Origin: Lytechinus pictus
Lineage: Eukaryota
Direction: 5' to 3'
Assembly (NCBI RefSeq): GCF_037042905.1
Contig: NW_026974241.1
Coordinates: 1-64,000 of the forward strand
DNA length: 64,000 nucleotides
Shown: piece by piece, positions 16,911 to 63,480 of the stretch
How the letters are laid out: each line of letters begins with the position of its first letter
Position numbering within the stretch: the stretch's first letter is position 1
Notes under the pieces: generated by a model
Told to the model about the DNA's origin: nothing
What the model saw: the letters and a program-made list of their open reading frames with translations, nothing else
Databases searched by the model: none
Position numbers and translations under genes: made by a program

Positions 16911-17170
16911 CTTTAAAAGAACAAGACATAAAATAAAAATATTATATTCTAAATGCAAACACTTCAATGCTTAAACTGATTGTGGTGTGGTTGGCAAACT
17001 CAAAAAAATTTATTATGATGTAGTATATGCAATTTTTCATGCTGAATACGAATCTGGCAATTGTTTCCCGTAATTTTGTCTCAATTCGACACAAATCAGG
17101 AAAAAGACCACGGTTAGGGAACGCCCACTAAAATTGTTCAAAAGTCTACCGATTACGTAATCGTTGTGTG

Positions 17171-17186
17171 ACGTCATCAAGGGAAT
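17171..17186 (+). promoter_or_regulatory. Subterminal inverted motif ACGTCATCAAGGGAAT upstream of KolX (overlaps CRE TGACGTCA at 17169-17176)
   Basis: Exact reverse complement at 31287-31302, upstream of the transposase ATG. Function is inferred. Confidence 0.55.
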
Positions 17187-17277
17187 ATCAAGCAGTGGGA
17201 TCGCTCGGCCAAGCGCGCGTATCCATTGAATTTTCACAACAAGTTCTCGCGAAACATTTTAAATTCAAGCACAAATC

Positions 17278-18956
17278 ATGAGTGATCTTTCAGGATCAGA
17301 GAGTGAATATGATCCTGCCCACTTGTCATCTGATCAAGATTCTCCATGGTCGAATTCAGAGAGTGAGCAAGAAGAAGAATTTGCCAGAGAAAATCAAGTA
17401 GAGGCCGGTCCTGATATTCCTGCTGGCATGCAAGCAGCGGGTATTTTGCCGTACCAATTCGAGCCCGAGTTCCAACCAGGGGAAGAAATTCAGAATGTTG
17501 GTGCCATCCAAGAAAATGACATTGAGGGTAGACTTGGAAACAACAATTGGTAAGATTATCTCATACATAATCGTATTATTAATACTCCGTAACTAGTACC
17601 CTGAGTGTCTGAAAAAGATGTCTCATCTGAGAAGGTCGGATTGGAAGTGACGGAGCACTAGCGTGCGCTGCAGCCGCTGCTACCCGACGCTTCCGGCTGG
17701 AAACACAGCTCAGTTACGTTGCTATTAAAAGCCGAAACGAGGCTGGTGAACGGATCTGAGCTGTGGCTGCTGCCCGATGCTTTGACCTGAGCTGAGGCGC
17801 TTCGAATTCGATGGAGTGAACTAGGAATCATTTTACTTGACCTAACACTTGGTATCTTGCAGTCTAATAAATGTTTTCATTTTGTTTTTCAAATTTCTGT
17901 TGTTCATGCAGGTGTTCATGCAGCGGAGGATGCCAAGCGATGCCTCGAGTTGTCGAGTCGTACTGCTGCAAAGAAGTGGCTCAGGTAGTGGCGATGATGG
18001 ACCAGTACACTGCTGCAGAACTGAACTGCATCACAGAGCACCCTGGCTTTGAAGGGGTTTGTTTAAATCCGTGGGTTTTAGACACTGCATACTTAGGGTA
18101 TCGTCAGCAATATGGTGACAGAGCACGGCATGATGCAACTGAAAATGAGTGAGTGTTTTTTCATGAACAATTGCACTTATTTTCTGCAATCTAATATTGG
18201 AATAAGAAAAAAATTATAAAAAAAAACATGATTTTTATCAACTCAAAATACTCAATTGTCCTGAATGGTATCATGTTTTATATCATTTAAAATTATGAAA
18301 ATATGTATCATAAGACATAAGGTAAGTGTTGTAATGAGCTACGGTGATATATATTTTTGAATGGTTATTTCCATTAGCAGTCTTCAATTTTATTCTTTTT
18401 TGACTCAGAGGTGTTAACTACAACCCCCTCCTTACTTATGAATCACCTAAAATATATGCACATGTAGTAGTCAGCATAGGCGGGGGGGGGGGAGGGAACG
18501 TGTCCCCACCCCCTAAATTTGAGGTGGGGGGACGATCCCCCCTAAATTTTTATTTGATCACCTTTTTTTTGCTTGTCAAAAGATTTTCTTGTCCCCCCCC
18601 CCTAAAATTTTGGTTGATAACTTTTTTTATTGGGGGGGGGGGGGTTGCTTGTCAAAAAATGTTGGTAATCCCCCTAGATTTTTTGACTTCCGCCGCTAAT
18701 GGTAGTCAGTAGGATTTAGGGGAAATTTTAATGATGTAGATTTAGAAATCATGTGATGTTCTGTATCTGATTTACTTATTTTTAATTTCTATTTATTTTT
18801 TGTAGGAAACACAGGCACGTTGGCTATCGGCAGCTCGCAAGATGGTGTTGGGGATTTCTAGGGAGATCTGTGCGCGTCCCCCTACCTTCCTGTGCGGTGA
18901 CTCACATCCGAGCTACTTATCCATCGGACATTTACAGAGGTTTTGAAGATGCGTAG
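17278..18956 (+). CDS. KolX-type transposon accessory protein with P2X7 C-terminal ballast-like Cys-rich domain (219 aa, 3 exons)
   Basis: Exons 17278-17549, 17912-18148, 18806-18956 (TAG); GT-AG, phases 2/2. Acidic N-terminus with PYQFEP, then WCSCSGGC..ESYCC..CITEHPGF..VCLNPWVL..NEKHRHVGYRQLARWCWG..LPSCAVTHIRATYP..YRGF. AATAAA at 19306. Confidence 0.88.
18475..18701. mobile_element. hAT-like MITE in KolX intron 2
   Basis: 8-bp TSD GTAGTCAG on both sides (18467-18474 and 18702-18709); ends cataggcgg / ccgctaatg. Confidence 0.7.
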
Positions 18957-20010
18957 ACCTTTTTTATGTTGATTTCAATGAAGGCGCCTCTGAATCAACA
19001 GAGACATACATGATTGATTCCATGACAAGGACTGGATGTACTTAAGTCTTAAACATTTTATCGAGTGCCATTATTTTGTGATCTCTCAACTAGAAGTACA
19101 TGTAATTTGAAAGAAATTTTTTGCCAAGTATACCTGGTGTGTAGAAGAAAATTTCTTTTTGTCACATTTTTGACTGATAAAAAGTCATAAAGATTCTGAT
19201 GTTTTTATCACTGTGCTAAAGACAAGCACTCAGAGTTGTTTTATTATTGTATGTTTTGATGAAATAACAGGGAAGTGCTGATTGTATTTATTTCTGTTTT
19301 CTTTAAATAAAGGTGTTCAAACCAACTTAATTTTCTTGCGTTCTTTTCCAAAGTCAGTTTAGGCAGTCTTACTACAGTCCACTTCTGTTATAATCTTAAT
19401 ATTTATGGCAGCACTCATGCAGTACATATGAAATTGGTACTGGAAAACTGCCTGTCATTATAAATTACTTTATCTGATTATCATTATAACAAGAGTGAAC
19501 TAATGAAACCAAACATTTTGGGTATGTTTGGCCTATAATCTAGGCAGCGGCTGGTGCTATTGTCTTTTGCTGCCAACTGTTAATGTAAACAAACAACGAT
19601 TTGCAGCCCACAGCTTATACTACAGTTAGCGTTGGTCAATTTTTTTAAATTATGGTCAACAAATAGGTGTGGAAGTTTCATACTAAAATTATGTGTTGTC
19701 TGTTGTTGATAAACAACGGCAACTATTAATGCAGGACCGGAGTGTATAGGCTGTGCTACTTTGTAGCCCACTGTTAACAGTTGAACGCAAAAGACAATGG
19801 CAGTAGCCCCGGGCAAGACTACAGGCTAGGAAATGTTGGATGATAGATGAATGATTGAATGTTGCAAAATTGCTTTGACTTAGATGAATATAAGGTAGAC
19901 TTAGGCAGAGTTATCTGTATTTAAATTCAGAGGTAAGAGCATTGTACAATGTAGATTTGATGGAAGTGGAGAACATGTGAAAGAGGGACAAAAGAGCGAT
20001 AGTGGAATCT

Positions 20011-20167
20011 GGGGCCCGTTTCATAAAGAACTGTGACTGTTGTAACTTTGCCATTATGGAAATTACCATGGTAACATTGCTCAGCAGCCAATCAAAATCA
20101 AGGTTACCATGGTAGTTGCCATAATGACAAAACTACCAACTGTTGTTACTCTTTATGAAACAGGCCC
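20011..20167. mobile_element. Harbinger-like palindromic MITE in the Kolobok intergenic spacer
   Basis: ggggcccgtttcataaaga ... tctttatgaaacaggccc. Confidence 0.6.
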
Positions 20168-21062
20168 AAGGGGCAAGAGTGCATGTAAAGAGGAATCCAA
20201 CCAAGATAAAAAGTTGTTAAAAGAGGGGAAAGAAAAATAATACAATAGGTGAAAGTGTATTATATCGGAGTAACAAGAAAGTTATGAATTTCTGAAAGTT
20301 GTAAAAATTTGTAATTTGTATACCATTAACTATCATGGAGGCTTCACCGTATTGATGCTGTCATCTTGATGGAGGGAATATTTTCCATTTGCCCAATATA
20401 CACAAATGTGTATTGCATAAAAAGTTATTTTTATTCACATTTTTACTTAAAATTATATATGGTATTTTTGCTCAGGAACATAAAAGATGCTGATATTTCA
20501 AGTACTACCGGGAGGGGGCCCTACTTATGGGTAATACACAATTCCCTGAGAACTGAGTATACAGCCCATTGGAAAGTTGTCCCTACCACTTGTTATAATT
20601 TACTTTCCAAATTGCCAACTTGCAATGTACAGTCTCGGTGATCTCATTTTTAAAACCTACATATAAAAATCCTTTATGGTTGTCAACAATATTCAGTCTA
20701 AAATTACAATAGTCCACTCCCATTATAATAAGACTTTCCAGGCCAAATCAATTACCTCTAAATAAATGCGGCATTGATTTTACACTTTATACTTGCATAA
20801 AAAATATGCCAATGCACAGTTTAGACATTTGGAGCATTGCAACAAGAGCGTCCTTCCAGTGCACATATAATGGTAGTGGACTGTATTACCATAAACTATG
20901 CAGTAGCTGTAGAAAGACAAGAGACAGAATGCTTTTTTTTTTGTTAAAAAATCCTGCAAACTATTATATTCTCAGAGAAGCATTGATTTGCAAGTAGAAA
21001 TGAGTGCAAGAGACATAAATATGAATAAATATAAGCTGGTCAATAGACATGTTATGGCTTAA

Positions 21063-21450
21063 CTCGTTCAGGACAATCGACCTTAAGTGGTTAAGGTAAA
21101 TCATTTTTGTTTCAGAGCTCTAAAAATTACACCAGGTACATTAGTAAAAGAGAGAAAAAAAAACTATGCATACATTGCACTCATTGTTGAGTGACCATAC
21201 TGCCAGGAATTTTATGAGGATAATCTTTAAACTCCTCAAATTGGCAACACATTGGAAGAATTGAAGACCAGAGTTTTTCATCGAAATTGGCGTTTAAAAA
21301 ATATTATCCAAGTTCCAAACCATGTATGTTGGTTTCAAAGACATCACATTCAATTGGAAGCATGTAGCATTAAAATAAATATTGCTGTTGCCCATTTGAG
21401 GAACGAAATGTGATCACTTTAGTTGTTAATTAATTCCTGTCCTGAATGGG
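21063..21450. mobile_element. piggyBac-like MITE in the Kolobok intergenic spacer
   Basis: TTAA|ctcgttcaggaca ... tgtcctgaatggg|TCAA (one TSD mismatch). Confidence 0.55.
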
Positions 21451-21479
21451 TCAAGATAAGTATAACCATGGAGGTAGTT

Positions 21480-21955
21480 TACAGAGTTGCTTGTACAAAT
21501 GCTTGAAAAAATTGGGGGGAAAAAAATGTTTTCCAATTTTAGTAGATGTTACATCAGGGAAGATTTTGGAAGCTACCTGAATCATCAAATTCAGCTGTTT
21601 AAAACATGGAACACTTTGAAATGCATTTCAAATGTATTTCTACCACTTCACCTACATTTATAAACACAATAACATTCATACAAAGAAATATCTATGTAAT
21701 ACATGCTATATAACTTCTTACAGAGTTGCTTGTAAAAATGCTTTAAAAAAATGTTTTCTGATTTTAGTAGCCGTTGCTTCAGGTCATGCAAGATTTTTTT
21801 TAAGCTACACGACACATATCCGAGTCATCAAATTCAGCTGGCTAAAACGTGAAATACTTTGACATGCATATCAAATGTACTTCAACTACTTCATCTACAT
21901 TTATAAATACAATCACATTTATGTAAAGAAATATCTACTTATTACATGCAAATAA
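21480..21955. repeat. Diverged tandem duplication, ~240-bp period
   Basis: acagagttgcttgta(c/a)aaatgctt at 21481 and 21720, followed by parallel downstream sequence. Confidence 0.65.
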
Positions 21956-22629
21956 CACAGTAGAGAAAACATTCTGATAATGCTCTTAAATCTTCAAAAT
22001 TTTATACAATTATTGCAGTTACTAGTATTCCGAAATTGTATAGACCATGAAAGTTTTCTTTTGGAAACCACTGTTGGAGCTACAGTGGTCGTAACCGGCC
22101 AGCATGAGAGATTTTGAACCACAACTCATCATGATAATCATTGACCAACGTTTCAAATGAATAGTATTTCTAACAAAACTCCTTGCAAAGAAGAATTGTA
22201 CATGTGTTACTGTTGAACAAATCTTTCCCAACAATATTTCCTTAAAATTATGTAACTGATCACTCACAAGTATGTGGTCGACTTTACTGTTGAACAAAAC
22301 TTAAACAAATATAATTCCATAATAGATATGATTCTTTTTGTTTAATAATTTTGAAGCAAAGGTATCAAATTGCTCAGTCATCTGTTTTGCCTTCACAATG
22401 TTATTTGTACAACTACATGTACATCAGAGATGTATGTCTTCATATAAAATTCGCTAAAAAATATAGTTCATCAGATGAAAATGGCATGTTTAATCATAAG
22501 GAATCTTTTCTTCAATAGAGTAACTAAATTTTCTCTTAAATGAACTTATGTGTTCAATCTTTCATTCGTTCCAATTTATCATGAAGCTGTATACGATATT
22601 AGCATGATAGGGTTTACAGTTCGCTTATT

Positions 22630-25600
22630 TTAATTAAAACGACTTCGGTGATCCTGAACAAGTTCCTCCTTGGGAGGAAAGGTATATTCACTGCATAAAG
22701 ATGGCGGGGCTTCCTTCCTCTCTGGCAGTTGAGATGATCCTGTGCACAATCGTCTGACCTCATCCATCAGATCATCAACAAATTCTGAGATACAAAAAGG
22801 TTAAAAAGTGAGGTTCAACATGTACAGGTCAGCTAGACCAGCTAATGGATATACAAATATGTTGGATGGTATTGATTTACCAGTGTTTTTCTTATGCCAT
22901 GTTAGTATGCTATAAAATGTACCACCAATGGGCATCAAGGAAAAAAAAAAGCTCTTTAATCTTTATAGATTATATTGTTGAGAACAGTTATAGTGATCAA
23001 CATAACACATGAGAAAAGTAGGATTTAACTGATGTTACTCTAGTAATGAATCATTGCCATGGAATCATCCTTTTTCATAATATGTTTCTGATATGATGAT
23101 GAACCTATAGTCGATAACACACAGAACAAAATAAACTCACTGAATGTTTTTGCTTCCTTAACAGCTTTCACTGATGCCTTCCCTGGCTTGTACTTTGGTT
23201 TGCTGACCATGTACCGCTTGTCCCCTTTCAACGTTTTTGCCTGCTGTCGGTTGCCATTTTCATTGAAGTCCATAGCAGCAAGTCTGAGCCTGAATGATAA
23301 CCAGAAAATAAATGCACATAGTAAAAGCATGTCTAATACAGTGCGTAAACACAATGCAACATGCAAATTGCTTTTATTTTTCACCCGGTTTAACTCAGAA
23401 GATTTTTCATTCTTGCACAAGAAAAACAGTTCAAAGAAAGGATACCAAAAAGTCACTTATCAGGGCTATCTGAATTTTAAACATAAAACTGTCTGCTCTT
23501 TCATTTGATACCCATACCACATGGAATGATCACGAAATACCAAAGTTAAGTTTATTCAAACTAATGCTTGAATTTTAATTTTATAAAATGAATGTGGCCT
23601 CTTACCACTAGCGTACCTACGGGGGGGACGAGCAACAACCCATACAAAATACATATCACTGCCCCCCCCCCCTGACGAGCTTGAAAGACCTTTTATGCCC
23701 CCCCCCCCCTGACGAACTTGAATACCTTTATTGCCCCCCCTGACGAGCTTGAAGACCTTTTTTTTTTTTTTTTGCTTTTTCAATTTTTTTTCAATAACCT
23801 TTATTTTTTATTGAAGACCTTTTTTTTCTTTCTTTTTTTCTGGTACAATAACCTTTTATTTTTCATTGAAGACCTTTTTTTTCTTTTTTTTTTCTGGTAC
23901 AATAACCTTTTATTTTTTATTGAAGACCTTTTTTTTTTTTTTTTTTTGGCGGCCGATTTTGCCCCCCCCCCCCCCCTGTGGAAAATCCTAGGTACGCCAC
24001 TGCCTCTTACTATCTGTCAGACTTTTTTTGGGGGGGGGGGTTATAAAACCATTTGCATTATTCCATATGGGTTTTAATCCAAACATTAGATCTACCCTTT
24101 TTAATAGAGTCCTATAAATATCCACTTTTGCTTGGAATTACCCACATTATTTTGTGTGTATGCTAAATAAAGAAACATGGTCCAATGTAACTCTTCTCAT
24201 AGAATATATAGTGCATTTACCTGCTAGTCATTCCTTCATACGAATAGGACTTCAGCTTGGGCGCATACCGGTTCACCAGACTGTGATATGACTCCAGGGA
24301 AGATGTCTGTTGGTCTCCAGACAACTTTTTCACATCGTTCAACAACATGGTGCTTTGCACGATACCTGTTAGTTTTTCACAGACTTTTGTGCCTGAAAAA
24401 TGGATACAAAAGGAGCGGAATCATTAAACAATTGTTGCCTTAGGTAACCAGTGTATCATGCTTAATGAGCAGGTAACGTCATAATTACAGTTTTCAAAAT
24501 GGAAAAAATGCAATAAAATTGAATCAACATACTTTATGAGAGTAATGGCATAAATTGATAATGAATGGTATTGGTAGGTAAGGAAAATACAATATTCATA
24601 AGGTTTGATTTTTCTTGTTTCATATGATACAGATCTAACATTAAACAAATGAATCTTATTCATGAATTTACCTGGTGTGAGCCATTTTTTCTTGCGACCT
24701 TGAGCTTGCAAGTCACCATGAAGACACTTGGGAAAGACTTCAGAATGACCTTCATGGATCCCTTGGATGTGGTTCATAAGAGACTTCCACTTGGCCACCC
24801 TCAGATCGTCTTCATCCTCTTCACAAGTTGCAGCCACCCAATACATGTGGTTGGTGATGCTTGGTTCCCATTGCACAAGTTCTTCACAATCCTTTTGCTT
24901 CGCCAAGGCATGCACCTTCTTTCCAACACCTAATATAGGTAATAAAAAATATACCAAAACTAAAAACAAAAACAACAAAAATGCCTTAATTGATGACATC
25001 ATGCGAAATGTTTATCATAGATAACTGCCTCACGTATTTATATGAAAAACCAAATGCAAGCATGATGCAAAAGAGAAACAAGGAGATGGAATGTGAAATA
25101 GAAGCATTAATTTTTGGACTAAATCACTACTCGCTTCACATGAAATGACATCACAGAATTCAGGCCTTTGACAAGTGAGATACTGCTGTTTTTTGAAGCT
25201 CGCTAATTTGAGTGCTTGTAAAGCAAAAAACTCACTTGGTAAGCAATTAAATTAGATAAAACTCACATTGTTTTCTGAGTACTTGCAGCATTCTAGCAGT
25301 GTATAGTTGCTTTTGCTTAGGACCAGGAGTTTAAGCACTAAATATTTAATCATAAACAAGTCGAATTAATATTTCATTTTAAATATATTTTGCAAGACAC
25401 AAATGTATGATAATTACTCACCTTTGGATACATGCCAGACATCATACACATGAATAATGTGTGGAAGTGTGATTCTGATGTATTTGGCAAGTTGTCTATG
25501 TCGGTCCGTTACCAACTTCCTGATTACTAGTCCCTTGTCATCAAGAAAGTTGACAACTCTCTTGAAACCTTCCAACTCCATGTGGTACGAACCCTTCACC

Positions 25601-28600
25601 TCATTACTCTATGAAAAAACAAAATACAAAATATAAATCAACATTGCATAACACACAATAGTGATAACATGAAATAACAGTTTGGGGCTGGAACATCAAA
25701 ATAGCCTTTAAATTTAATCAATTTAAATTGGCAGACATGAATATAATAAGTAACCAAGACAAGAGGAATTGTGTTTCAACTTAACCCGTCTTGGCAAAAA
25801 TGCAGATTCTTTATATTTACTTTCTATTTCATGAAATAAAACTAGGCACTTGTGGTCATATGTATCATGGGAACATGAACTAAGGACAGAAAATCAGACC
25901 CACCTGAACCAGCTGAAAATCAACAATCTTGTTGACATTCAATTCTAGGGCAGTGTATACCCCAAACTTTGCAGAATGTCCTGGACTGTCCGCTCTCCCA
26001 TCTCCCCCAATGGTGAGTGGCAGACCCCGTTCACACAGTTCAGTGAGCAGATGGTTCTGTTGCTTCTGCCATTGATTGGTGATAGCTGGATGCAAAACTT
26101 TCTGCTGGTGTCGGAAGAAAGTCCTGCGTGTGTGCGTTGCTACGTTAAAATGCTTCAGCACTCGCAGCGACTCACTGGGGCTCCCGCCAGCAAACAGGAT
26201 TGCCGCTGACAGCTGGAGGTTGCCAGCAGGATAGGGGCCTATCCATGGCTGGCTCTCCCATGTTGTCGACTTCTGGTCACAAGACAGGCACTCCCTTGTC
26301 ACAGAAAGGAGGCTTCCAACTTCCCTCTTTACAAGGGACACATTTGCAGACTTGCAGGATGGGCAAAACTGCAACAGCTCCAAAAGCTTAGACTCGTATA
26401 CAATGTATTTTTTTTCCTTGTGTGGAGGAATACCTTGGGCTGGGGCTTCCCATGTGGCCTTTTTGCTTGATCGCCTTTTCCTGTATTTGAAATAAAAGAC
26501 AAAAAATAAAATTGTTTAGAAATACAAAAAAAATCCTAAAAGACGATGTAAGAATTTCATCAGCCTGCTGTTGCTGTAATATATAAGAAAAATTATCTAA
26601 AATGCTTTATTTATTAAATCACTATGATATGTGTCTGAGGTTTTTCTCAAAAGAATTTACAGTACTAGTATTGATTTTGAACAGGATAATGAAAGAACTA
26701 ACCGTTTTCTCTGTCTTTTTTGTGGCTTGGCAATAACACGCTCATCTGATGATGAAGATGAAGATGATGGTGGTTTGTATCCAGGTGAGGAGGGTTCTGC
26801 GGCGTCACTTTCTGGAGATGATAACCTTTCTTCCTCCGCTTCCTTCGCATCAACTTTCTCTTCTGGTATATCCCCTTTGTCAAAAGAGGTCCCTCTTGAA
26901 ATAAAGGCTGGAATATCGGGTGGTATCTGTGAACCTGTGTTCTGCAGAAGTACAACCCTTTGGGACCCTGAAAATGTCCATGTATATTTTACTTTTACTT
27001 TGGTTGTGAAACAAATTTTCAGACATAGGGGAACACAACATATCTGCAATCCAGGGTGTAAGTTATCTGTGGCCCGGACTACTGCGTAGGACTTATTCTT
27101 CAAGTGGAATTGCAACATTTACACCTTCAAATTGGTACCCGTAACTTATCTTTCTAGCAACATTGTGAATAATATGTGACATACTGAGCATGACTCCTGT
27201 TAATGGTTTTGGTACTGCGCATATGCAAATCAGCAAAATCGCTTGCAAGTATCCAAAAATATACAAGGAACACAGAATGATGCAGTATTCTATTAAATGT
27301 AAATGTATAATAGCTATAGATGTTCATGACTATCATAGCCAAGTTAATTAAACTACATGACACTGATTCTGTCAGATTGGGAATGAATATCAGTAATTCA
27401 ATATTTATAGCCTCAATAAATATATTATCTAGAGCATATGTTTACAAAAACTTTCCACAACTTAGCAGCACCAGCCTCAAAAGGAAAATTGACAATATAG
27501 ATAAACAGATGAAAAATAAACTTACGTTTAACTCTTGTTGCTACAGAGACCTGTATCCCAACAGAGGTTGTATGGCCATGCTGCTGAAATTCCATAGCTG
27601 GATCTTTGAACGGCTGTTAATTGGATATCAATACAGTAGCCAAAATATGCTGAATACATGTACATACCACTACCAGTGACATGCAAAAAAATTATATACA
27701 TAAATAAAGTATGGTTTCCAGCACAAATACTAATCAAAACTACACCTGAATCAATTTTGGGATAAACTGTAATTTCAGTCACAGCCAGGTATGTTAAGAC
27801 TTGGAAGACAAGTATTATGAGTTTTTCATGAACCATATGTCTTGTTTGAATCACATGCATAAAGGTTTTGGTTTCTTTGGAAAGAAAAAAATGTCAATAT
27901 AATTTACATGTATCCTAAATTCTGCTAAATTCATTGTGGTTGATAATTTACTCAATATTATCCCTTATTTGCTGCTAAATTACCTTTTATGTTTGTTTGC
28001 TTTCATGTCTTTTCACGGGGAGGGGGTGCACAATTTGAAAACAAATTTATACCTGTTCATCAAAGGATTCTTCAGACTCAGATGAATGTTCATCTGTCCA
28101 TTGGCTGCATCCTGGCTCATCAGTGTCTGATGGACTTTCCATTGATGCAGGCTCCACTGCTGACCCTTGCTCCTCAGCATCCCTAGCTTCAACAGATGTT
28201 GACAGCAATTCATCCAGCATCTGTGAGAATAATTTAAATAAAAAATGAGAGAAAAATATACACAATAGCCATGTGTTCTTATTTCTAAAATAATAAACTT
28301 AAGGAATTAATAACATATTAACATGCTAATTTCAGCCTTAAGTTTGGGCTGTGTAACATGTATTTTTTTTAATATGAAATAAACCATGATTGAATTGAAT
28401 GGAATTAGAAATCATCTTCCTTCAGATCTATTTTTCATTCAGACCTCAGTTAGATTTCACTACCTACTTTATGATGTATGGCAGTGAGTACAAACTGTTG
28501 CAAAGTCACCCTACATAATTTCATATATGCATTGTATGGAGTAATCATTGGTGGGATAAGAAAGTCCAAATATTACATTTTAAATTTTCAGTACGAGAAA

Positions 28601-31139
28601 TTAGATGTATGCATATTTATGCAAATTGGAGCACCTAATTTGCTTAATTGGTAAAATGAGCATTAAGTATTTATTACAATTATTAAAAATCATAGAAAAT
28701 AAAAAAAGTGAGAAATTAAACATTGGTGGGACATGGAACCTCTAACGCTCTAACATTTTATTATTGAGGGCTATCTATATTAATATGCAAATTAAGTAAT
28801 GTCAAAAGACAAAATGATCTATATGTAATACTTTGGGGACATTTTAAAACTTATTTCCCGGAGTACAATACTTGCATTATTGCATCTTTAGGCAGACTTT
28901 CTGACTTATCAAGTATAAAAATGTAATACCACGAAAATAATCAAAAATACAAATTCGTTTTTTTTTCAAATAAAATTGTCAATTCATTCATTCCACTGTA
29001 TCTTCAACCATGACAATTGAGATGTTTCATTGTATTTATATCTCATTCAACCAAATAACTTAATTTAATTATATTTTGCACATTGTATCTCTACATTAAT
29101 CCCTGTATTGTAATTATTAAATCAATTCAGTTATGTTGTATTTGCTATCACAAAGATAATTTTCATGCCTTATTGTATATCCAAATCAATTCTTATAGAG
29201 CCCAATAGTTCATCCCATTTTCATTATTTCTGTACACTCTTTAAAAAAATTTTATTTCTATCAAAAAAAATTTCTTCTAAAAAATATAGATCTACATGTA
29301 TAGCTCCATGGTATAAACTATTTCTACAATCATTATTGTGAATCTTTTAACTCTGTATATTATTGCATGAACAATTTTGTCCAAACTTATAATATCATGT
29401 TGTTTAGAAGGTTCCTTTCATGCAGATTTGTTTACCCTTCTCATGACTTTGTAAAACAAACACTGAATTGAATTCATTTCTTTTCCATTAAAATATACAA
29501 AATCAAGACAAAGAAACATTACAAAACATAAAAATGAGACAATATACAATATGATATTAGGCCTGGAATCTGGATCTGGAATAAAAAAAAAAACTTTTTG
29601 GCTTTTTAAAAAAAAGGTAAAAATAATCTAACGTTTTAATTCCCAGGGTAGCCACTTCAGTTAGGAAACTGTTCTACCACCGGGCCCTGCATAACATAAT
29701 AATTAATACCTGAATGTAATTGTAATTATTATCCTTCTCCAATCTAAATGCTGAGTGCCTAGTATTTTAGTAAGGCAGGAGGTCCCTTTTTTAATGACTC
29801 GGTCGGGTATCGAACCCAAGACCTCCCGTTCATGAGGCAGGCGCTTTACCACTAGAGCCACCATACCCCCAAAAGAGTTTGTATATTTCCTTACTTGAGA
29901 AATGAACCACAATGGCACAAACAACTGAAACAAGAAAACTTTTAGACCTAACGTTGGGCCTACTGTACCTCTTCACAGCACTAGCCACGTACTACAATGT
30001 AGATCCTGTCTTGAAATACAACTCACAATTAATAGGATTTCTAATTCGCAACAGAAATTTAGAATTCGTAGACCTGTTTCCAATGTCATGAATGTGGAGC
30101 CTGGACTCTTGAGGAAAGTTTGAGGATCACTTCAATTTCCTTTTTTATTTTCGAGGCGTATCCTATGGCAAGTTCCCCCAAGTCTACGCACACGCGTATC
30201 AGCGCAATTCTAGTAAAAGAAGATACGCAACGAGCACGAGCTCTACACATGCAATACCTAGCCATAGCCTAGGTCTACAGGCTGACAGGTATTTAAAAAA
30301 AAATCTGACTCAAAATGATGGATTTAGGGCATTTCATGTGACGGCATCAAAATGCAGCCTTTCTCATCAAAATCCCCGAATCGTGTGCAAAGATTGAGTG
30401 CGCAGACATGGGCTCGGGGTAGGCCTACCATTTTTTGACAAATCTGAAAATTACAGTAGGCCTACGAGGTTTTTCCAAGAAAATCCTATAGGCCTATTTT
30501 CTTTCATTTTTTTAATGAGAAATTTAGTACAATTACTAAAATACTAATAATAATATAAGGAACATTATTAACGGAAAGATTTTGTTAATAAATAATAAGA
30601 AGAAATTCATGTTAATCTAAACTCAAATTGTTTGATGCGCAGACTTGGGGCCCACCATCATAAACACCTTCAAAATAAAAAATAAATAAAATAAGGAAAT
30701 TGACGTGATCCTCACACTTTCCGTCGTTGAACTTGAACTGACTGACCACAACAATTGCAAAGATAAACTTTAAACAAAGTCTATTACTAATAGATAATAT
30801 GCTCACCCTCATTTTCTTTCGTTTGTCCGCTGCTGTCCGTGACCCACTCCTCTTTACTTGCATTGATGACCCACTCTTTATTTTAGGCACAGCGTCGGGC
30901 TTCAGCCGCCGGGTCCTCTTCATGCCAAAAGCAGCATGCAACCCGTCATCAAAATCCGCATCTTCGAAGTGGCTACTGCACACCACGCTCCAGTCACTGG
31001 GGCCGCTCCAATTTGCTCGGGTCAACTTCACTTTCGAGACCCATATTCTGCGTAAATTTGCATCTTTGGGAAACAAATGCAAGCTGGCACCATCCTTCGT
31101 AGTGTTGCTGCAACCTCCGACGATGCATCTCGCCGGCAT
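22630..31139 (-). CDS. Kolobok-type transposase: THAP + C4 zinc finger + DDE nuclease (783 aa, 10 exons)
   Basis: Exons 31139-30807, 28220-28053, 27613-27526, 26967-26703, 26480-25904, 25608-25422, 24929-24672, 24392-24221, 23289-23141, 22784-22630 (TAA); all GT-AG, 2352 nt open. THAP: CIVGGC..FP..W..CSSHF..AVP. C4 finger: CPSC..CLSC. Catalytic motifs: GDGRADSPGHSAKFG, LVTDRH, DVWH, TSSLESYHS. Also NHxxxxH..CLH. The low-complexity exons 2-4 are the least certain. Confidence 0.88.
23606..24002. mobile_element. hAT-like MITE in transposase intron 8
   Basis: 8-bp TSD CCTCTTAC (23598-23605 and 24003-24010); TIR cactagcgtaccta / taggtacgccactg; internal gaagacc-poly(T) repeats. Confidence 0.8.
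29643..29866 (-). mobile_element. tRNA-derived SINE in transposase intron 1
   Basis: Minus-strand A box tggctctagtgg and B box ggttcgataccc, followed by a non-tRNA body. Confidence 0.7.
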
Positions 31140-31286
31140 CTTGATATTATCGCAAATATCACAAATGTACAAAACTTTTCCAAAAAGAACTCGGTAAACT
31201 TTCTCAACAATACAGCGCTACAATACGTAAACATAATAGACGAAAACTTTTTACGTGCGCGATGATCGAGTTTGCAGAGCTGCCAG

Positions 31287-31357
31287 ATTCCCTTGATGAC
31301 GTATAGTCACGTGACTAGCGAGCTCGAGAGTTTTCGATCTTTTTCTGGAGGCGGGGC
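31287..31357 (-). promoter_or_regulatory. Putative transposase promoter
   Basis: 16-bp mirror motif (31287-31302), perfect palindrome TAGTCACGTGACTA (E-box/CLEAR-like, 31304-31317) and GC box GAGGCGGGGC (31348-31357), ~150-220 bp upstream of ATG 31139. Confidence 0.5.
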
Positions 31358-34300
31358 TTATGAGCGTGAGAAACTATGAAATTAACTTCTAAAACCAGCA
31401 ATATCTTATTAATCCTAGATAAATAAATCATATTAATAATGTTAAAATTCTTAGAAAAACAATTGAAAACTAATAAGAGCAAAATATAGTTGCATGACTC
31501 AGAACCTTTAAGCCTCCCACCTCTCCAACTACTCAAGCTTCTCAACTCTTTCTGATTTCCAGTCCTTTTGAGAAATACACTCATTTCCGAAAATTACTCT
31601 ACTTTCTAACCTCCACTTTCTCGCCTATCCATTTTAATTCTACCTCTATTCTGCATTTTTACTTTTCTTTTTTTGTGTGTGTGTGTTTAAAAAAAAATTG
31701 TCCTCCACATCACATGGACATTGCCTCTTGGTTGATTTGAAGAAAATCTTCCGGGGTGGGTGGGAAGGGTTAATTTAGCCGCATATGACACGTACTCTCT
31801 ACTACACAATTGGCAGAAGTTTACATTTTATGTGTAAGTTGGGGAGTTGCCAATTTAGTCATACTATTTTCACTGATTAAAGGTAATTAAAAGTACCTGT
31901 CAGAGACCTTTAACGCCTACATATTTGTCCTTGATTTCTTTAACCTTTACGTTTGTTTCGTGACCATCAAACCTCAACGACTTTATTTGATTTGTGGTTT
32001 TTTTTCTATATCAACTACTCAAGGAAAAGATTTGCTCAGTGAAGCAGAGATATAAAATTGATAATATCCCATAGGTATAAGAGGGAGTCAAATACTTAAA
32101 ACAATAATATCATTGTCGCTATAAGCATAGGACGGGAAATAAAATATAAGAGCGTTTTCATAAGTTTTCTGTGTATACAATTTACATGTTATATATAATC
32201 AAGTTTTAAACAGAGATGCAGAATGAAATGTAATTGGACAGATTACACAATCAAGGTAATGGAATTACAATAAATGTCGATCCATAAACATGAGTAAAAA
32301 AAATCCTTACTAATTTATAAGCTACCTCAATGTCATTCAAAACTTTAATTAGAGGACTGGTGACGTTTCAGCTGAGTCTATATATTAATAAATAGCTGAG
32401 TCTATATATTGATAAATAGGTTTTTAAGAAAAAGCAAGGAGATACGACCTCTAAACCCCCTTGGAATAAGGCAGTAGCGCAATTAGCCCATAATAAATTT
32501 AGGCGGCAAGACATGGTGTATGGGGCCCAATTAAAAAAAGTTGCGATTGAGTGAAGCGAGCGAGCAAAAATGTTGACCTGTTTCAATACAAAAATCTAAT
32601 TTTGTTATATATTTTGACTTATTCAGAGAAATAATATCATTTTTCCTTTCATTCCCCTTTCTTTCTCTTTCCCTTTTTTTCTTGGTCGTCATGTTTTTTA
32701 GGGCGGATTCATGGCCCGAGCCCCCCTTCCCATCTTTACGCAAGTGGATTAAGCACCCCTTATTTCAATTTTCTAATAATTGTTAAAGATCATGTTATCA
32801 TAAAACGGCAAAGAAGATCATCCAGAAGCATGAGAAGTATAAGCAATAAAATTGTTCACTATGAGGGACATTCTGTATTCCATTCAAAGAAAAATGACAA
32901 TACATAATGTTATGATATTGATAATATATTATCACTGAATAACATTTCATGTATCATTTGAATGTCGTTAACTATTAAAGAGTTTATGTAATGGAAATGA
33001 CCATGAAAACCTACAAGTTAGAGTGCTTCTAATTTTCTGGTCAATTTTTCAAAAGATTTCAGTTCGCGCTTTGGGTTCTTATTAATATTTACATGTACAT
33101 AGTACCTAGTCTTGTTGTAGAAATGAGCTTAAAAAAAAAAGATCAGCTGGAAGGATTGACCCCCCCCCCGCTGGCCTTCATATGTGGGGCTTGGGACCCC
33201 CCAAAAAAAAATGAATGAAGGAGAATTTTTGCTCGCTCATTCGCAACTTTTTATAAATTTTGCCCTTTATAAAATTATTATGCTAACCCTTAAAAATTTT
33301 TGCTTAAAAATAAGCAGCAATTACTTTAGAATGGATACAATTTTCATCACACTGGATAAATAAAAATGCCCAAAAGAAATGCCCAATGTTGTTTGGACAC
33401 AAAATTACCCTCATGGAGCCACTGACCCCCCCCCCCCTCTAAATAAAAAAAAATCCCTCAGAGAAAATTTGTATCAGTCATCCCCCCCCCCGCTACCATG
33501 AACACCGATCGACACCCATACTTCAGTCGCCAACCGACCACGTACAAAATAACAAGCCCTTTGAATACATACCCTTATTCAAATATAATTTCAGAAAGAC
33601 TGATGCCTGATACAAAAGAACATCTTGCATGCTGAACCACCTGCTGAACCGGATCCAATTTACGAAAGAAAAGAAAATCGTTACCTTGTAAAATGATTTA
33701 CCACTATCAGGGAATGCTTGTTTGCTGTATGAATTTCATCACGTACACTTACTTCATGGGCTGGTGCGTTTTATATGCTATCCTACCACCAATCTACGTA
33801 CGGGTGAACTTTCTCACGATAAAACACCATTATTTTCCAAACTTCCAAATAAAGCATCTATTTGTTTATCAATTTTTTTCAAATCGTATGTGGTTGATAA
33901 ACTTCTTGCGAATCAAGTAAATGTCAATAAATGTGGTCAGCGTTTACGCACTTGCCATTCTTAATTATAAATAGATTGATTTGTTTTGACAGGTGTTTAT
34001 TGCTATCTGAAACAGCCCCCCCCAAAAAAAAAAAAAAATGTCAATCAATTTCGTCGAAAGTTGGTGGACTGGGATAGCAGATCATCTGAAGATTTGCACC
34101 GGACAAACAATTGCAAATAATTATGTCGTTGCACATGTGCAAGAGATTCCAATGCAGTCCCGGTCTACCAACTTTCGATAAAAGCCTCCCAGCTCTCCAT
34201 TGTGATTTAACTTGCATTTTCAAAGGAATTGGTGCGTTGTAGAGAGTTCCCCCGTAGTAAATGCGAAAACTCTCTATTTTCTCCTTTAAGAATTAAAATT

Positions 34301-57100: not shown

Positions 57101-60100
57101 AATATATAAGTCTATTCTATTCTATTCTATTCTATTGACCTGCTGCTTTTATTAATTCTCAAAGTATGGTGGCGTGATGACTTTTAGGTGGCTGATCACG
57201 GTAGGAACTGGTTGGTTGATAGGGTCAATATTTACTTGTTGGAAATCCACGCCTTTGAAAGAGAGAACATAAATAAGTCGTAACAAATATATAGGTCAAA
57301 GTAGATTGACAGGTGCAATATCTGGGGTTATATTCTATTTTGTGTCATCATGGTCATCTAATTATCAAAAACAAACTTTTTTTGTTGTCAGAGAGCTGTC
57401 GTCCCAAACGATGATTATTCCGTCAAAACGCAACCTTATAAAGTCGACAAACCGTGAATGCTCGGAATACATTGCGGTTTTTCACCTTCCTTTATTTACA
57501 CAATTGCAGTAAAAACAGATCCAGTACATTTTTATACGATATCCAAGGTTCATTCCTAATAAACGAACTATTTATTTATATAGCATCTCCGAGCCCACTG
57601 GATTCTGAAATACCTCACTAAGCACGGGGAAGCAAGGAAAGGGTTAAACAATAATGTATTTACATACAGTACTACAAGGCTGTATTAATTTTGATTTTAC
57701 TGTCAAAATGGAATCTTTGTTTGCTGGTTAATATTATCTGGTTGTATGATCGTGACACTTAGGAAAATCCCTGCCCCTCTCTTTATTAGGGAGATTTCGC
57801 AACACTACGCAGACGTTTTCTAGAACGCTGGGAATCTATTGTCCAAAGCCCTTCATGGCATAACCTTTGTCGAAAATTGGTGAATCAAAACAGCAGTGTC
57901 GTCCTGGACTCTTGACAAACGACACATTTGCAATTTTTCGTCAGCTCCGAATCTCAAGACGATCTGCTGTCTCGGTCCACCAATTTTCGACAAAGACCTT
58001 TCAGCTGTCCATTGTGATATGACAGCCATTTTCAATAGACTTAAACATGTTGTAGAATTCGCCCCTCTTGCAATTGCGAAAACTTAATTGCTACTTACAC
58101 TTCTACCTGCACCAATTCGCCTATATCTCTTTCTCACTCTCTTCTTTCTTTGTCCTCTATTCTTCACTATTTGGTATTATGATTGTCTTACTTTTTGTCC
58201 TTCATTGGTTATAATGTTTAATATTTTATGTAGCATTTTTTATTGTCTTCTGTTCTCTTCATCATTTTGCATACCAGCTTGTTTCAACGGTTCCATGACA
58301 TTTGCTCCTCCACACACTAATCGAAAGACCAACTTCAACACTGGATTTAACACTATACCCTATCCTAAACCTAACCCTAAACCTAACATAAACCCCTACT
58401 GCAACACTAAACCCAACTCTATATCTTAGACGAAATAAAGCCCGGAGCAATTGTCGCTGGAGCAAATGTCGTGTCACCTGTTTGTTTCAACATGTACTAA
58501 GTTGAAACAAGTCTCAAAGGATTGCCTTTCATACAAGCATACAGCTTTTCTTTTCTTTTTTTACTTACTTTTGACAAAGTATTATAGCTACGTGCGAATT
58601 TTTCTTTTCTTCTACTTTGTTATCAATTTACGATTGACCTACTTTGGGATATATTTGACTTTGTTATGTTACTCGGTTAAGTGAACGTGAAATTATTAAT
58701 ACAAATACCAGAAGCGGATCTAGAGGGGGGGTTGGTGGGTTGCAACCCCCCCCAAAAAAAAAATCCGGGGACCATTTTTTTTAATCTTATCTTTTTTTTA
58801 AAACTTGTAATTTTATTTTATTCTATTTTATGCAAGAAAACGCCATTTTCACACACAGATTTTCAAAAATTTTCCCTACTGTGGGAGGGGGGACACCCCC
58901 CTCCCACACCCTCCCCCCTCGCTCGCTCTGCTCGCTTGGACTCGGTCGCTACGCTCCCTCGCATACCACCCCAACCCCCCCCTTTATAAAAAGCTGGATC
59001 CGCCCCTGAATACAGGTAACCACACCTCCATTTTGAATTACAAAGCAAGATTTAAGATGTCATCATTTTGCTCAACACCACAATGGCCGATGTTGTTATG
59101 AATGCAAATATACTGATATACTGCTTTTTAAAGTCCAGATGTAAAAAAAAAATCTGAAGAAATATCAGGAAATAATTGACTTAAGTAATAATGTCAGTCA
59201 AATAACAAAGGAGGCTATATAAGTTACAGAAACCGAACAATTAATGTAATTTTCCATCTTTCTCGCTTCCCTTATTGAAAATCGTAGGGGGTGATTACTA
59301 TAAAAATAGTATATGTATATGTGTATATATCCCTTTATTTCTTTGTCTCTTTTCTCCCGTATAGCTCGGCCACTCTACCCGTAACCATCACAAGTCTTGA
59401 GAACAATAATAAGATTGATAAAAGAGTCACTCGTTTCGTACTTCCCATTGGTGCAACCATTAACATGGACGGAACAGCCCTCTACGAAGCCGTGGCAGCC
59501 ATCTTCATTGCCCAGGTCAACGACTACAGCCTCGACGCCGTCGACGTCATCGTCATCAGGTACGGAAGGGAATGTTCTCATTGGTCAATTTTGAAACCTA
59601 TGTGCGATGAGCTCGGTAACATAAAGCATAATGATCGATCGTACGTGAGATTTATACGATTAATCACAGAAAAAAGATCTGTGCAATAAATCGATTGAAT
59701 CAACCCTCCATTTAATTCCGCTTTTTTATGCTTTACGTTCATGTTCTTTCAACTTTATTTAAACAAAAACAATAAATAAAAAAACATACATCCGAAATAC
59801 ATAAAGCGTGAAACAACGACAAATAACTTCACTGCAAACAAATGTTCAGATTTTCTGACAAAATCTTTATACATTTTCCTTGAGAGTTTGAAGGGCTCTG
59901 AAGTCGATATGTATCTTGTAAAATATAACGGTATTAATGTTACTGTAAGCGTATTTTCGAATTGAATGCAAAATTGTGGGATCAAACACAATCCATTTGG
60001 TTTAAGCATTTTTGTTCCGATCAGCAAACGATTATCGTTGGTGAATATGGATGAATTATACAGAGTAACTATAAGCTTGTAGGGATCGCTGTGAAAGTGC

Positions 60101-61667
60101 ATGCATTACCAACTGATCTATGAATCAAAAGTGCTGAATATTCTTTGAAATTAAATGATCCTGTAAAAAAAGAAAGGACAATCCAATGTTGTAAGAATGA
60201 TTGATAGATTTGAGGGGCGTCCTTTTCAAGCCTTTGTGCTTATGACTGTTCCCTCCCATGCAATGATTGTTTATTGTTATTTTACCATGAGATATTGTCA
60301 ATATATTTTTCTGTTGTACGATTTATTTTTGCATGGAAATAAAGAATCAATCAATCAATCAATTTGTTCAATTTGAAAAAAAGTGTATTGGGTATATTAT
60401 CAGCACGCGAATCGATTTACTCATCACTGCTCATTGAGTGTACGTGGACAATAAGAGATCAACGACATACACATCTTGGAATTGTCTTCACTCTAAAACA
60501 ATATTTGGGGAAAATGCTCCGTGAGGGTAATTATGTGTCCAACCAACATTGCGCATTTCTTTTGGGCATTTTTATATATCAAGTGTGATGAAGATTCGGC
60601 CCATTCTAACGTTATTACTGCTTATTTTTTAACCTTACTGCACAATATGCTTCCCACATTGGGTGAAATACTGCCCAAAATTGGTTGGACACATAATTAC
60701 CCTCGTTCTGGTTAAAATTTTACCCAATATGTTTTTACAGTGTTGAACGCGTTTGGGATCTGCAGCTGGCGAACTCCGTTTACGCGTATTCCTATATCCT
60801 CTGAGGGAGGGCGCTATGAGATTATTGCGTCACAGACAAGGGTTTATATTCTTGGAATAATTTGTTCTTTCTCCCACAGTATCACAGCTACCCTTGCTAG
60901 TGTCGGGGCAGCAGGCGTGCCACAAGCCGGTCTCGTAACCTTAGTAATCGTCCTCAACGCAGTGGGTCTACCAGCCGATGACATCACTCTTATCCTCGTC
61001 ATTGATTGGTTTCTGTAAGTGACGTCATTTCGATTTATATTCTCCTTTGTGTGCATTAGGTAGAAATAATCAAAACAAAAATCTTAAACTTTGGATGGTG
61101 TCTTTTGCTTTCAGAATTCAGATGAATCAGATATTTGTAAGAGTGTTTTATTTTACATTATTGTTTAACAGAAACATTTTAAATAACTTATACACTTGTT
61201 CGTTTTTATTGTGATGCTGATATGGATCCTTAACAACCAAAATATGAGTTCAAATCAAATTATCAAACAGATTCTGTATAAAAAAAAATGTGCCTGCTCA
61301 ATTTACCAATAACCACTTTAATTGGGATACCGCTCCCTCTACTTCAGTTATTCGATCCCTTGGTTCGTTTTAAAGTCCCTTGTCTCCTTATGTATGAATG
61401 TAATTGATTTGAAATAAAATATTGGGAAAGTTAAGTTACCATGTCCTTATTCGGCCTCTTTTCCACAGGGACCGTGTCCGTACCACAGTCAACGTAGAGG
61501 GCGACTCGTTCGGTTGCGGCATAATTTACAAGTACACCAAACCTGACTTTGACCGCATCGACCAAGAGAATATGGAGAAAGCATTGACGAACGGTTACCA
61601 CAACGAGAAGAAAACCCCCATTGATATGCTGGATGGTAACATCTCCGGAGACGACACACGCTTGTAA
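39177..61667 (+). CDS. SLC1A-family excitatory amino acid (glutamate/aspartate) transporter, 537 aa, 8 exons
   Basis: Exons 39177-39413, 40561-40808, 51187-51229, 54165-54487, 55414-55647, 59365-59559, 60880-61014, 61469-61667; GT-AG with consistent phases. Motifs: [77 protein letters not shown]. The specific vertebrate ortholog cannot be assigned by eye. Confidence 0.95.
39852..40070. mobile_element. CACT-terminated palindromic MITE
   Basis: cactaaaaaacaaatcagtcaaaaatgactag ... ctagtcaatttgactaatttgttttaagagtg. Confidence 0.6.
40225..40542. mobile_element. Harbinger-like MITE, 18 nt upstream of SLC1A exon 2
   Basis: TIR ggcccgtattctgaagtc / gacttcagaatacgggcc with 3-bp TSD AAT. A truncated second copy is at ~44386-44640. 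Confidence 0.85.
41248..42127. repeat. Identical 94-bp direct repeat (41248-41341 and 42034-42127)
   Basis: aaggttattattgtatgtttgc...ccgtttcgatttctttcaac occurs twice. Confidence 0.85.
45066..49476. mobile_element. Harbinger-like TIR element split by an Academ-like insertion
   Basis: Inverted ends ctgcaccatcccgagttt / aaactcgggatggtgcag(acggccc); repeated internal aatctcgagatt palindromes. Confidence 0.6.
45160..48689. mobile_element. Academ-like non-autonomous foldback element with ~177-bp internal repeats
   Basis: Termini TAGACGGGTCAATAT / ATATTGACCCGTCTA with 3-bp TSD CGT. Near-identical inverted blocks at ~45195-45340 and ~48520-48665. Units gttacaaggacagtcagtgg run forward in the left arm and reversed in the right arm. 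Confidence 0.75.
50419..50785 (-). pseudogene. Orphan Ig I-set domain C-terminal half plus a hydrophobic (GPI-signal-like) tail, antisense within SLC1A intron 2
   Basis: ...[36 protein letters not shown] (Ig E-F-G strand pattern). In another frame, 50558-50419 reads [45 protein letters not shown]. No canonical donor joins the two. Confidence 0.5.
54900..55195. repeat. Interspersed repeat (further copy at ~57790-58085; fragments near 34050-34260, 35285-35410 and 55860)
   Basis: Shared cgcagacgttttcta..gaatctattgtc..ctttgtcgaaa..ggtgaatcaaaaca..gtcgtcctggactct..ttcgacaaa..cagctgtccattg. Confidence 0.7.
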
Positions 61668-62898
61668 ACCGACATCCCGCCGACATCGATTTCGAGTTCA
61701 AAGACCAATTGGTGCAAACCATTCTACTTTCTACATTCTACATTCTAGTTTCGTAGGCCTTCTTTGAAAACGCAATGCATTTCAGAATGCTCTAGTGGGC
61801 GGAAATCCTAGGGGGACAGGGGGACGCGTCCCCCCTACCCCAAATAGCAGGGGGACACAATATCAAATGTCCCCCTACTATTTTTAGTCTTTTATGATGG
61901 AAAGAATTACATCATTCAAAATCGAAATAAAACATGCATTTTTTTTGCTTGTCAAATTTATTTTGGTCGAAATGACCTTACATTGGGGTATTAACCTTTT
62001 TTTTCCAGCCCTTGGTCCCTCTACCTTTGGGGAGAGATTTCCGCCCTTGGCTCTCATACGAAAGCAAAAGCATTCTACTATTTGATTTTAACTTCTAAGG
62101 CAATATCACTTCTCATCTTTCGACAGGTAACGAATGGAGCTCAAATTTTTGTTGTTACGTAATGACCACTTTCAGTTGCTCAATAGGAAATTAGAATACG
62201 AGGCCTTTGAAAACACGAGAACCGCACAAAATGTTACTGTTTTCATAATTTAGACATAAATTTCAAAGTAATGTCTAAATCTTCGAGAAGCAAATGTAGT
62301 CTACGCAATATCGAATCTAAAAATGTTTACTCAGAATTTTCCTGTATTATAATTTTTTGAAGCATATTGTATTTCTTTATTTTTTCACGGTTAATCGTAT
62401 AAAGTTTTGCTGTGCTTTGTTTTATTATAATCGCATAATGTAATTTGATATTACCTACAAATTGATATCAAGCATTTTATGCATTATTTTTCTGTTACCC
62501 AGTGACCACCCCTCTCTCCCCTCTCTTTCTCCCTCTCTCTTTCTCTTCCAAACATGAGTGCATTTTTCCAAAGAGAGCATTACGCACATGATAAAATCCA
62601 GAACTTTATTTCATTTAAATACTGAATTACTTTATCGCCTGTAATGCTTTAACTTTTCATGCTTTTCAACAGGTTAATTACTAAAAAAATTGAATCTTCT
62701 TTTGTGAACCATGGTCACCTACATCCTTTTTATCGTTTATGTCTTTCATTTTTGTTTCATATTGTATATATATATTATACTATAACGATGAGTATATTTG
62801 TATATTTTAGTACTTTCGTATAGTTTTATCGCAGCTTGCTATATACATATTTCGCAATTTACTCCAAATCTCTATGTAGGGTTGTTTTTCAGCCTAAA

Positions 62899-63480
62899 AG
62901 GGATGGTCCAGGCTGAAAGTATTCATAGCTTAATAAATAGAGTAGAATTCACTGAGCAAAATGCTGAAAATTTCATCGAAATCGGATAACAAATAACAAA
63001 GTTATTGAATTTTAAAGTTTAGCAATATTTTGTGAAAACAGTCGTCATGAATATTCATTACGTGGGTTGATGATGTCACATCTCCACTTATTATTTTGTA
63101 TTTTATTATATGAAATTAGGTTTATTCAATTTTTTTCCTCCAAGAACTAGAAAAATTGGATTGACAACTGATTTAGTGCATTAGATATTTATTGCTGCAA
63201 CTTATTTCATTATAAGGGAGATATATTATTCACACAAGTATGAATTAATGAAAAAATATGATTTTATGTAATAACATAAGAAAACAGAAAGTGGAGATGT
63301 GACATCATCAGCCCACCTAATGAATATTCATGACGACTGTTTTCACAATATATTGCTAAACTTTAAACTTCAATAACTTTATTATTTGTTATCCGATTTT
63401 GATGAAATTTTTTGGCATTTTGCTCAGTGAATTCTACTCTATGTATTAAGATATAAATATTTTCAGCCCGGACCATCCCT
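62899..63480. mobile_element. Kolobok-type palindromic MITE
   Basis: TAAA|agggatggtccaggctgaaa ... tttcagcccggaccatccct|TTAA; inverted arms of ~200 bp. Confidence 0.8.

Follow-up and report, generated by a model that had tools for sequence, protein, structure and literature searches.

A putative KolX protein of a Lytechinus pictus Kolobok transposon with the zinc cysteines and a partly kept nucleotide pocket of the P2X7 ballast

Does the small protein encoded beside the transposase of a Kolobok DNA transposon carry a guanine nucleotide into the transposition reaction? The question is raised by a stretch of 64,000 nucleotides from Lytechinus pictus (contig NW_026974241.1, which is scaffold JAZDCF010000121.1 of GCA_037042905.1, positions 1 to 64,000; hereafter the window), in which a three-exon gene encodes a relative of the ballast domain of the P2X7 receptor. 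We consider this gene very probably to be KolX, the second open reading frame (ORF2), of a Kolobok element of the Kol0 lineage. A first-pass annotation had described its product as a transposon accessory protein retaining the Zn-ligand cysteines and the guanosine diphosphate (GDP) pocket motifs of the ballast, and had proposed it as a guanine-nucleotide-binding cofactor of the transposase. As judged from sequence, the predicted Zn site is fully kept and the predicted GDP pocket is partly kept and remodelled, and the proposed cofactor role is improbable.

The whole KolX protein matches the Pfam family PF20478 (P2RX7_C) over residues 84-216 (E 1.2e-12; 48.6 bits against a gathering cut-off of 23.5). 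This is the only Pfam domain in the 219 residues, and the same search found no P2X ATP-gated channel with two transmembrane helices; the name 'P2X purinoceptor 7-like', which NCBI attaches to relatives, is misleading. Exon 3 alone still matches PF20478 at E 2.3e-6, aligning to human P2X7 546-592, and exon 2 alone gave no match in Pfam. When the two were compared singly with Protein Data Bank sequences, exon 3 reached P2X7 in the correct place at a non-significant E of 0.8 and exon 2 reached unrelated proteins (E 0.5). A word search recovered 57 relatives, of which 51 contain PF20478; they belong to echinoderms, molluscs, cnidarians, amphioxus, a hemichordate and fishes. The family profile was built on 49 of these, which also underlie the residue counts below, and it found the P2X7 chains of human, mouse and rat with E values of 2e-10 to 1e-9, the match covering P2X7 residues 470-594 (human P2X7 470-593, E 1.9e-10).

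An AlphaFold2 model points to the same family. The modelled sequence was P0010, a 98.6% identical stand-in that heads the 49-relative alignment; its three substitutions relative to the window protein all fall outside the Cys and pocket positions. Its predicted local distance difference test score (pLDDT) is 84-97 for residues 80-219 and about 47-55 for the N-terminal tail, which is disordered in the model. The first 14 Foldseek matches were all P2X7 at probability 1.0, and all others had E >4. Superposition on the ballast had been set beforehand as one point on which the proposal could fail; the model superposes on P2X7 with a VIA-align Z of 10.5 and a root-mean-square deviation of 3.5 Å over 123-125 residues, model residues 66-215 pairing with P2X7 389-589. 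In an exhaustive comparison with 48,161 representative solved chains, P2X7 was the sole match at Z of at least 5 (9.9), the runner-up reaching 4.1. KolX is thus predicted to be built around a stand-alone P2X7-type ballast domain (ZCD, PF20478).

Every motif named by the first-pass annotation is found in the spliced protein: on the Zn-cluster side W91-C92-x-C94-x3-C98, E106-x-x-C109-C110, C130-I-T and L196-P-S-C199, and on the pocket side R173-H174-x-x-Y177-R178, W183-x-x-G186, I204-R205-x-x-Y208-P209 and Y213-x-G215-F216. Residue pairs between the window protein and human P2X7 were read from the family profile alignment, with the Zn and GDP residue lists taken from Rump 2020 and Durner 2023. 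The seven cysteines stand in ballast order, as had been claimed, and align to the seven P2X7 ligands: C92, C94 and C98 to C477, C479 and C482, C109 and C110 to C498 and C499, C130 to C506, and C199 to C572. The first cluster, C-x-C-x3-C, is one residue longer than the WCxCx2C of PF20478. Among the relatives all seven positions are Cys wherever covered, bar one sequence each at C109 and C199, and we would firmly expect the ballast domain of KolX to bind two Zn ions.

The pocket motifs, which had also been described as retained, are so only in part. The GDP-contacting side chains of P2X7, as cited in PMC7016195, are R546, H547, R574, R578 and K583. Three of the five are kept in the window protein, as R173, H174 and R205 in place of R546, H547 and R578; V201 and S210 replace R574 and K583. 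Y177 corresponds to Y550, and G215 and F216 to G590 and F591, and the stretch aligned to the further contacts A567 and L569 (PMC9859053) is kept as V194-P-L196. The same division runs through the family. The equivalents of R546 and R578 are each Arg in 47/49 relatives (with Y550 included, conservation is 47-48/49) and that of H547 is His in 35 and Tyr in 12, whereas the R574 equivalent is Val in 44/49, the K583 equivalent is Pro or Ser in 40/49, and neither is basic in any of the 49. In addition, the family conserves several residues not found in P2X7, namely C141, C184, R182, K/R190 and R193. Within the KolX clade C141 (18060-18062) is Cys in 48/49 and C184 (18846-18848) in 45/49, and as a pair they could make up a third metal site or be linked by a disulfide.

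The claim that KolX is a transposon accessory protein is borne out by its setting, since the gene lies convergent with a THAP-DDE Kolobok transposase inside a TTAA-flanked element (Table 1). A THAP domain opens the transposase gene (Pfam E 2.5e-16), and the exons contain the motifs GDGRADSPG, VTDRH, DVWH and LESYH, which match the published Kolobok alignment (in Kolobok_1_AP_2p, for example, GDGQYDSPG, DRH, DVWH and LESYHN). The NCBI model of the transposase, of 783 amino acids, holds the THAP domain and a faint Mutator match, and the Pfam search of the window transposase, which returned these two alone, found no GTP-binding domain of the P-element type (GTP, guanosine triphosphate). The convergent pair recurs at four other loci: a paralogous L. 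pictus family with the matching two-gene layout and 64% KolX protein identity (L001), a chromosomal L. pictus copy (L003), the starfish Acanthaster planci (L004) and L. variegatus (L007). At a locus of the oyster Ostrea edulis (L005) the transposase is present only in part, and at one of the soft coral Xenia sp. (L006) only as remnants. Compared with the window, the L. variegatus copy has a 1-nucleotide gap in the exon that encodes the first catalytic D (18425-18957 of that locus). At this point the NCBI annotation breaks the transposase into two models, neither with a Pfam match, and on this reading of the sequence the transposase may be broken and KolX intact.

Table 1. Positions in the window of the KolX gene, its exons and the parts of the surrounding Kolobok element
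Feature	Position	Strand	Basis or remark
KolX gene, 3 exons, 219 amino acids	17278..18956	+	spliced coding sequence (CDS), P0063 identity, Pfam PF20478
KolX exon 1, ATG to TG|gtaag; acidic disordered tail, residues 1-90	17278..17549	+	
KolX exon 2 (cag|G...GA|gtgagt); C92, C94, C98, C109, C110, C130 and first ballast helices	17912..18148	+	
KolX exon 3 (tag|G...TAG); C-terminal helices, R173, H174, Y177, R205, C199, G215-F216 end	18806..18956	+	
Kolobok THAP-DDE transposase gene, multi-exon, convergent (tail-to-tail) with KolX	22633..31139	-	THAP domain, Kolobok motifs
Kolobok element as present in the window, left 20-nucleotide terminus missing	16999..31507		identity with L003; right end read
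TTAA adjoining the right terminus	31508..31511		terminus begins AGGTTCTGAG when read inward
16-mer ACGTCATCAAGGGAAT upstream of the KolX start codon	17171..17186	+	inverted twin 31287-31302 upstream of the transposase start

The KolX gene is transcribed and spliced. Its CDS of 660 nucleotides, with GT..AG introns, yields a product identical over all 219 residues to an L. pictus 'uncharacterized protein' of NCBI (P0063, by cluster look-up), which is registered there under 4 accessions and 3 LOC numbers. The span first assigned to the gene, 17547-18956, reached from the final codon of exon 1 through exon 2 and intron 2 to the end of exon 3, and left the acidic N-terminus (17278-17549) outside. 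Transcripts assembled from runs X1 and X2 cover 17000-17548, 17911-18148 and 18806-19100/19300 with 0 mismatches, and both introns are removed from them at GT..AG, with breaks at 17548|17911 and 18148|18806. In the raw stranded reads of run X21, which hold variant letters and possibly come from another allele or copy, six reads span the junction of exons 1 and 2 in the sense expected of + strand RNA. Raw depth over KolX begins at about 17154-17230 in this run, and exon 3 is barely covered in the raw reads, of which about 6% of each run was read.

Two further observations concern the transcripts. Some RNA reads and contigs leave exon 2 (window 18149-18151) for sequence encoding ...ENEWNKPSQR-stop, as in NCBI LOC135153414 (P0001). 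This alternative 3' end was sought in the window sequence and is absent from it, so it belongs to another locus, from which a truncated KolX fragment without the pocket helices is transcribed. Intron 2 of KolX also holds G-run/C-run repeat units (18465-18700) that recur inverted in the transposase region (23660-24055); the RNA reads on them are loose-ended and from both strands, which marks the units as a dispersed repeat.

Selection was gauged from the ratio of nonsynonymous to synonymous substitution (dN/dS) between the window and the L. variegatus copy. The ratio is 0.16 for KolX as a whole and 0.10 for its ballast domain (dS 0.137), where the 4 changes are conservative and none falls on a Cys or pocket residue; the tail gives 0.50, a value resting on few changes. 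For the transposase exons carrying D2 and E it is 0.13-0.16. The ballast domain is therefore under purifying selection about as strong as that on the catalytic exons. Because the constraint on KolX equals that on the catalytic core, and the copies compared sit at different loci, we take KolX to serve the element, and it probably acts with the transposase during transposition. Against this stands the possibility that KolX is a domesticated host gene beside the transposase that no longer serves the transposon, like zebrafish Nanor, a very improbable reading for which speak the low copy number, the lost left terminus of the window copy, the transcription of the gene and the earlier domestication of the ballast in P2X7 and Nanor (PMC9587614), and against which speak the position of KolX inside a TTAA-flanked element, the unrelated flanks of the L. 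pictus and L. variegatus copies, a second copy 100% identical over 11,958 bp and the paralogous family with the same layout.

What, then, might KolX do for the transposase? Part of the answer may lie in the region before the first cysteines. Residues 1-85 contain 21 D+E against 2 K+R, with an isoelectric point (pI) of 4.05 and a net charge of -19, and within them stands the motif P58-Y-Q-F-E-P63. In 18/18 full-length relatives checked there is an acidic tail, of net charge -12 to -25, and likewise a PYx[FY]EP motif, which precedes the first Cys cluster by 31-64 residues, and by 31-46 in all but one relative. An acidic tail with an embedded short motif is thus a conserved trait of the family. 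At the other end of the protein the last 50 residues have a pI of 9.7. The tail and its motif could attach KolX to the transposase or shield the basic surface; that the tail acts as a DNA mimic, as the first-pass annotation had suggested, we only infer.

This layout of charges speaks for a rival explanation, though one less likely than not, namely that KolX is a Zn-stabilised adaptor or regulator without a nucleotide ligand. Its basic C-terminal helices would bind transposon-end DNA or RNA, and the acidic tail would mask these helices or mimic DNA towards the transposase, tuning or limiting transposition. The family-conserved R182, K/R190 and R193, which P2X7 lacks, speak for such a role, as does the presence of tail and motif in every full-length relative. 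Less easily reconciled with it are the ballast domain itself, which is near neutral overall (pI 6.55), the faster evolution of the tail relative to the domain, and the failure to match a DNA-binding fold among the 48,161 chains, where structures other than P2X7 reach Z 4.1 or less.

A ligand for the pocket is likely in a more general sense. The surface formed by R173, H174, Y177 and R205 together with R182, K/R190 and R193 would hold a phosphate-bearing molecule. Guanine nucleotide would be the leading single candidate by homology with P2X7, though a doubtful one, and transposon DNA or RNA would be the main alternative. Beyond this lies the reading that KolX is a guanine-nucleotide-binding subunit, through which the THAP Kolobok transposase would acquire in trans a dependence on GTP that is built into P-element transposase in cis. 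It draws on the conserved equivalents of R546, H547, Y550 and R578, on the kept V194-P-L196 stretch and on the lack of a P-element-type GTP-binding domain in the window transposase by Pfam; furthermore, the C-terminal half that bears the pocket is also the part kept by piggyBac-encoded KolX-like proteins (PMC9587614). Several points weigh against this reading and make it unlikely. Two of the five contacting side chains are replaced, never by a basic residue. The P2X7 cavity is also built in part from helix alpha-9 of the neighbouring subunit (PMC9859053), which a monomeric KolX would be without. A GTP need of Kolobok transposition is not reported in the literature searched, and the parallel with the P element rests on the shared THAP domain only.

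It is also improbable, to a similar degree, that KolX is a true sensor of guanine nucleotide, or of another phosphate ligand, needed in trans by the Kolobok transposase. Were it so, the consequences would reach beyond this element: the GDP site of P2X7 would be the relic of a transposition cofactor, and the KolX-like C-terminal modules of Kolobok and piggyBac, unrelated elements that both insert at TTAA, would reflect a shared reaction step. As a small and soluble protein that is expressed and selectively constrained, KolX would lend itself easily to questions of Zn and nucleotide binding, and the two-gene element offers transposition as a direct functional readout.

Whether the window copy itself could still move is a separate matter. 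Its right end, at 31507, adjoins TTAA and begins with AG reading inward, which fits the 5'-RR ends and TTAA target of Kolobok. The copies L003 (CM073236.1), which matches the window at 100% identity for 11,958 bp from window 16999 onward, and L007, 88-93% identical across aligned blocks, both show TTAA followed by a 20-nucleotide terminus starting AGGTTTT, beside unrelated flanks. This left terminus was searched through the whole window and is absent. A repeat search likewise found no terminal inverted repeat of the window element, because this copy lacks its left terminus. Own mobility is thus probably lost; with it, the low copy number of the family and the chance that the three loci with identical KolX protein may be partly assembly duplicates count against an active element at this site. 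The truncated copy abuts a WD40 (WDR70-like) gene at 16999, yet its identity with the intact copy is 100% across 12 kb; the missing terminus would mean that truncation was very recent, that the event was one-ended or that the assembly was joined at this point.

The left flank of L003 (7131-9721) matches window 61433-64000 in reverse complement, with 99.96% identity, and window 61431-61434 is a clean TTAA without an element where L003 carries its copy. Either these are a filled and an empty site 30 kb from the truncated copy, through a local hop or a haplotype difference, or the scaffold is rearranged or mis-joined. A host gene of the SLC1A type (excitatory amino acid transporter) has an exon at window 59291-59689 (+).

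Within the element, the two subterminal regions when aligned have only the 16-mer ACGTCATCAAGGGAAT in common, which the window contains twice without mismatch, where 0.09 copies would be expected by chance. Raw RNA depth starts just downstream of the left copy. The pair is either a promoter element common to both genes or a repeat near the termini that the transposase would bind. The left copy also sits within a perfect TGACGTCA (CRE-like) site.

Little of this is new in principle. The identity of KolX, its ballast fold and its pattern of Cys and GDP residues were published in 2020-2022, and the locus adds a well-preserved example and family statistics. The ZCD was defined by Rump et al. 2020, who reported it from across the Metazoa, among them a sea urchin whose member conserves all Zn Cys and the equivalents of R546, H547 and R578 and lacks those of R574 and K583; whether stand-alone ZCDs bind GDP was already asked there for the sea-urchin homologues (PMC7016195). 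These stand-alone ZCD or Nanor-like proteins (Panther PTHR36981) are one protein family with the window KolX, although in PMC7016195 they passed for host genes and their link to a transposon went unnoticed. Kojima and Bao 2022 recognised such proteins as KolX of Kol0 Kolobok transposons with a ballast fold, so that the similarity mentioned by the first-pass annotation was indeed in print, and put KolX forward as the source of both the P2X7 ballast and zebrafish Nanor (PMC9587614). In the literature searched, KolX in the transposon sense is mentioned only in that paper. P2X7 is a medically important receptor, and KolX the likely ancestor of its ballast domain.

Set beside the P2X7 ballast (rat 6u9v/6u9w, human 9e3m), KolX has a common fold with 27-30% identity over about 125 residues. 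The two share the seven Zn cysteines, R546, H547, Y550, W556, P570, I577 and R578, and also F/Y581, P582, G590 and F591. In contrast, the channel, the C-cys anchor and the trimer context of P2X7 are all missing from KolX, as are R574, K583 and C573; the spacer from the CC pair to CIT is 19 residues in KolX against 6 in P2X7, and the family-own residues listed above are found in KolX only.

The published Kol0 KolX proteins (Kolobok-1_XT, _Aqu, _SKow, _BF, _AP and others; PMC9587614) stand closer. They too are encoded by a second ORF beside a THAP-DDD/E transposase, and have in common with the window element a ballast fold with seven conserved Cys, within the Kolobok hallmarks of a TTAA target, purine-purine ends (5'-RR...YY-3') and, in the Kol0 lineage, KolX. 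Compared by eye and unscored with the published Figure S6, the window protein is closest to Kolobok-1_Aqu_2p (HPGF..VCL, YRQL..WCW, LG+..RV.LP.CAV..IR). The window element differs as a new echinoid family with the extra residue in its first Cys cluster, and the published figure gives the ballast part only, the acidic tail with PYx[FY]EP not being included there.

The more distant comparison is with the P element, of which guanine nucleotide is a proven cofactor; its GTP site lies within the transposase itself and has a fold unlike the ballast. The GTP-binding insertion domain of the P-element / THAP9 transposase was reportedly described by Ghanim et al. 2019. We found no homology between the P-element GTP-binding domain and the ballast. 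New here, as a hypothesis drawn from that analogy, is that KolX would supply guanine nucleotide to the transposase. Both the P element and the window Kolobok have THAP-bearing cut-and-paste transposases; guanine nucleotide is proven in the first and proposed in the second.

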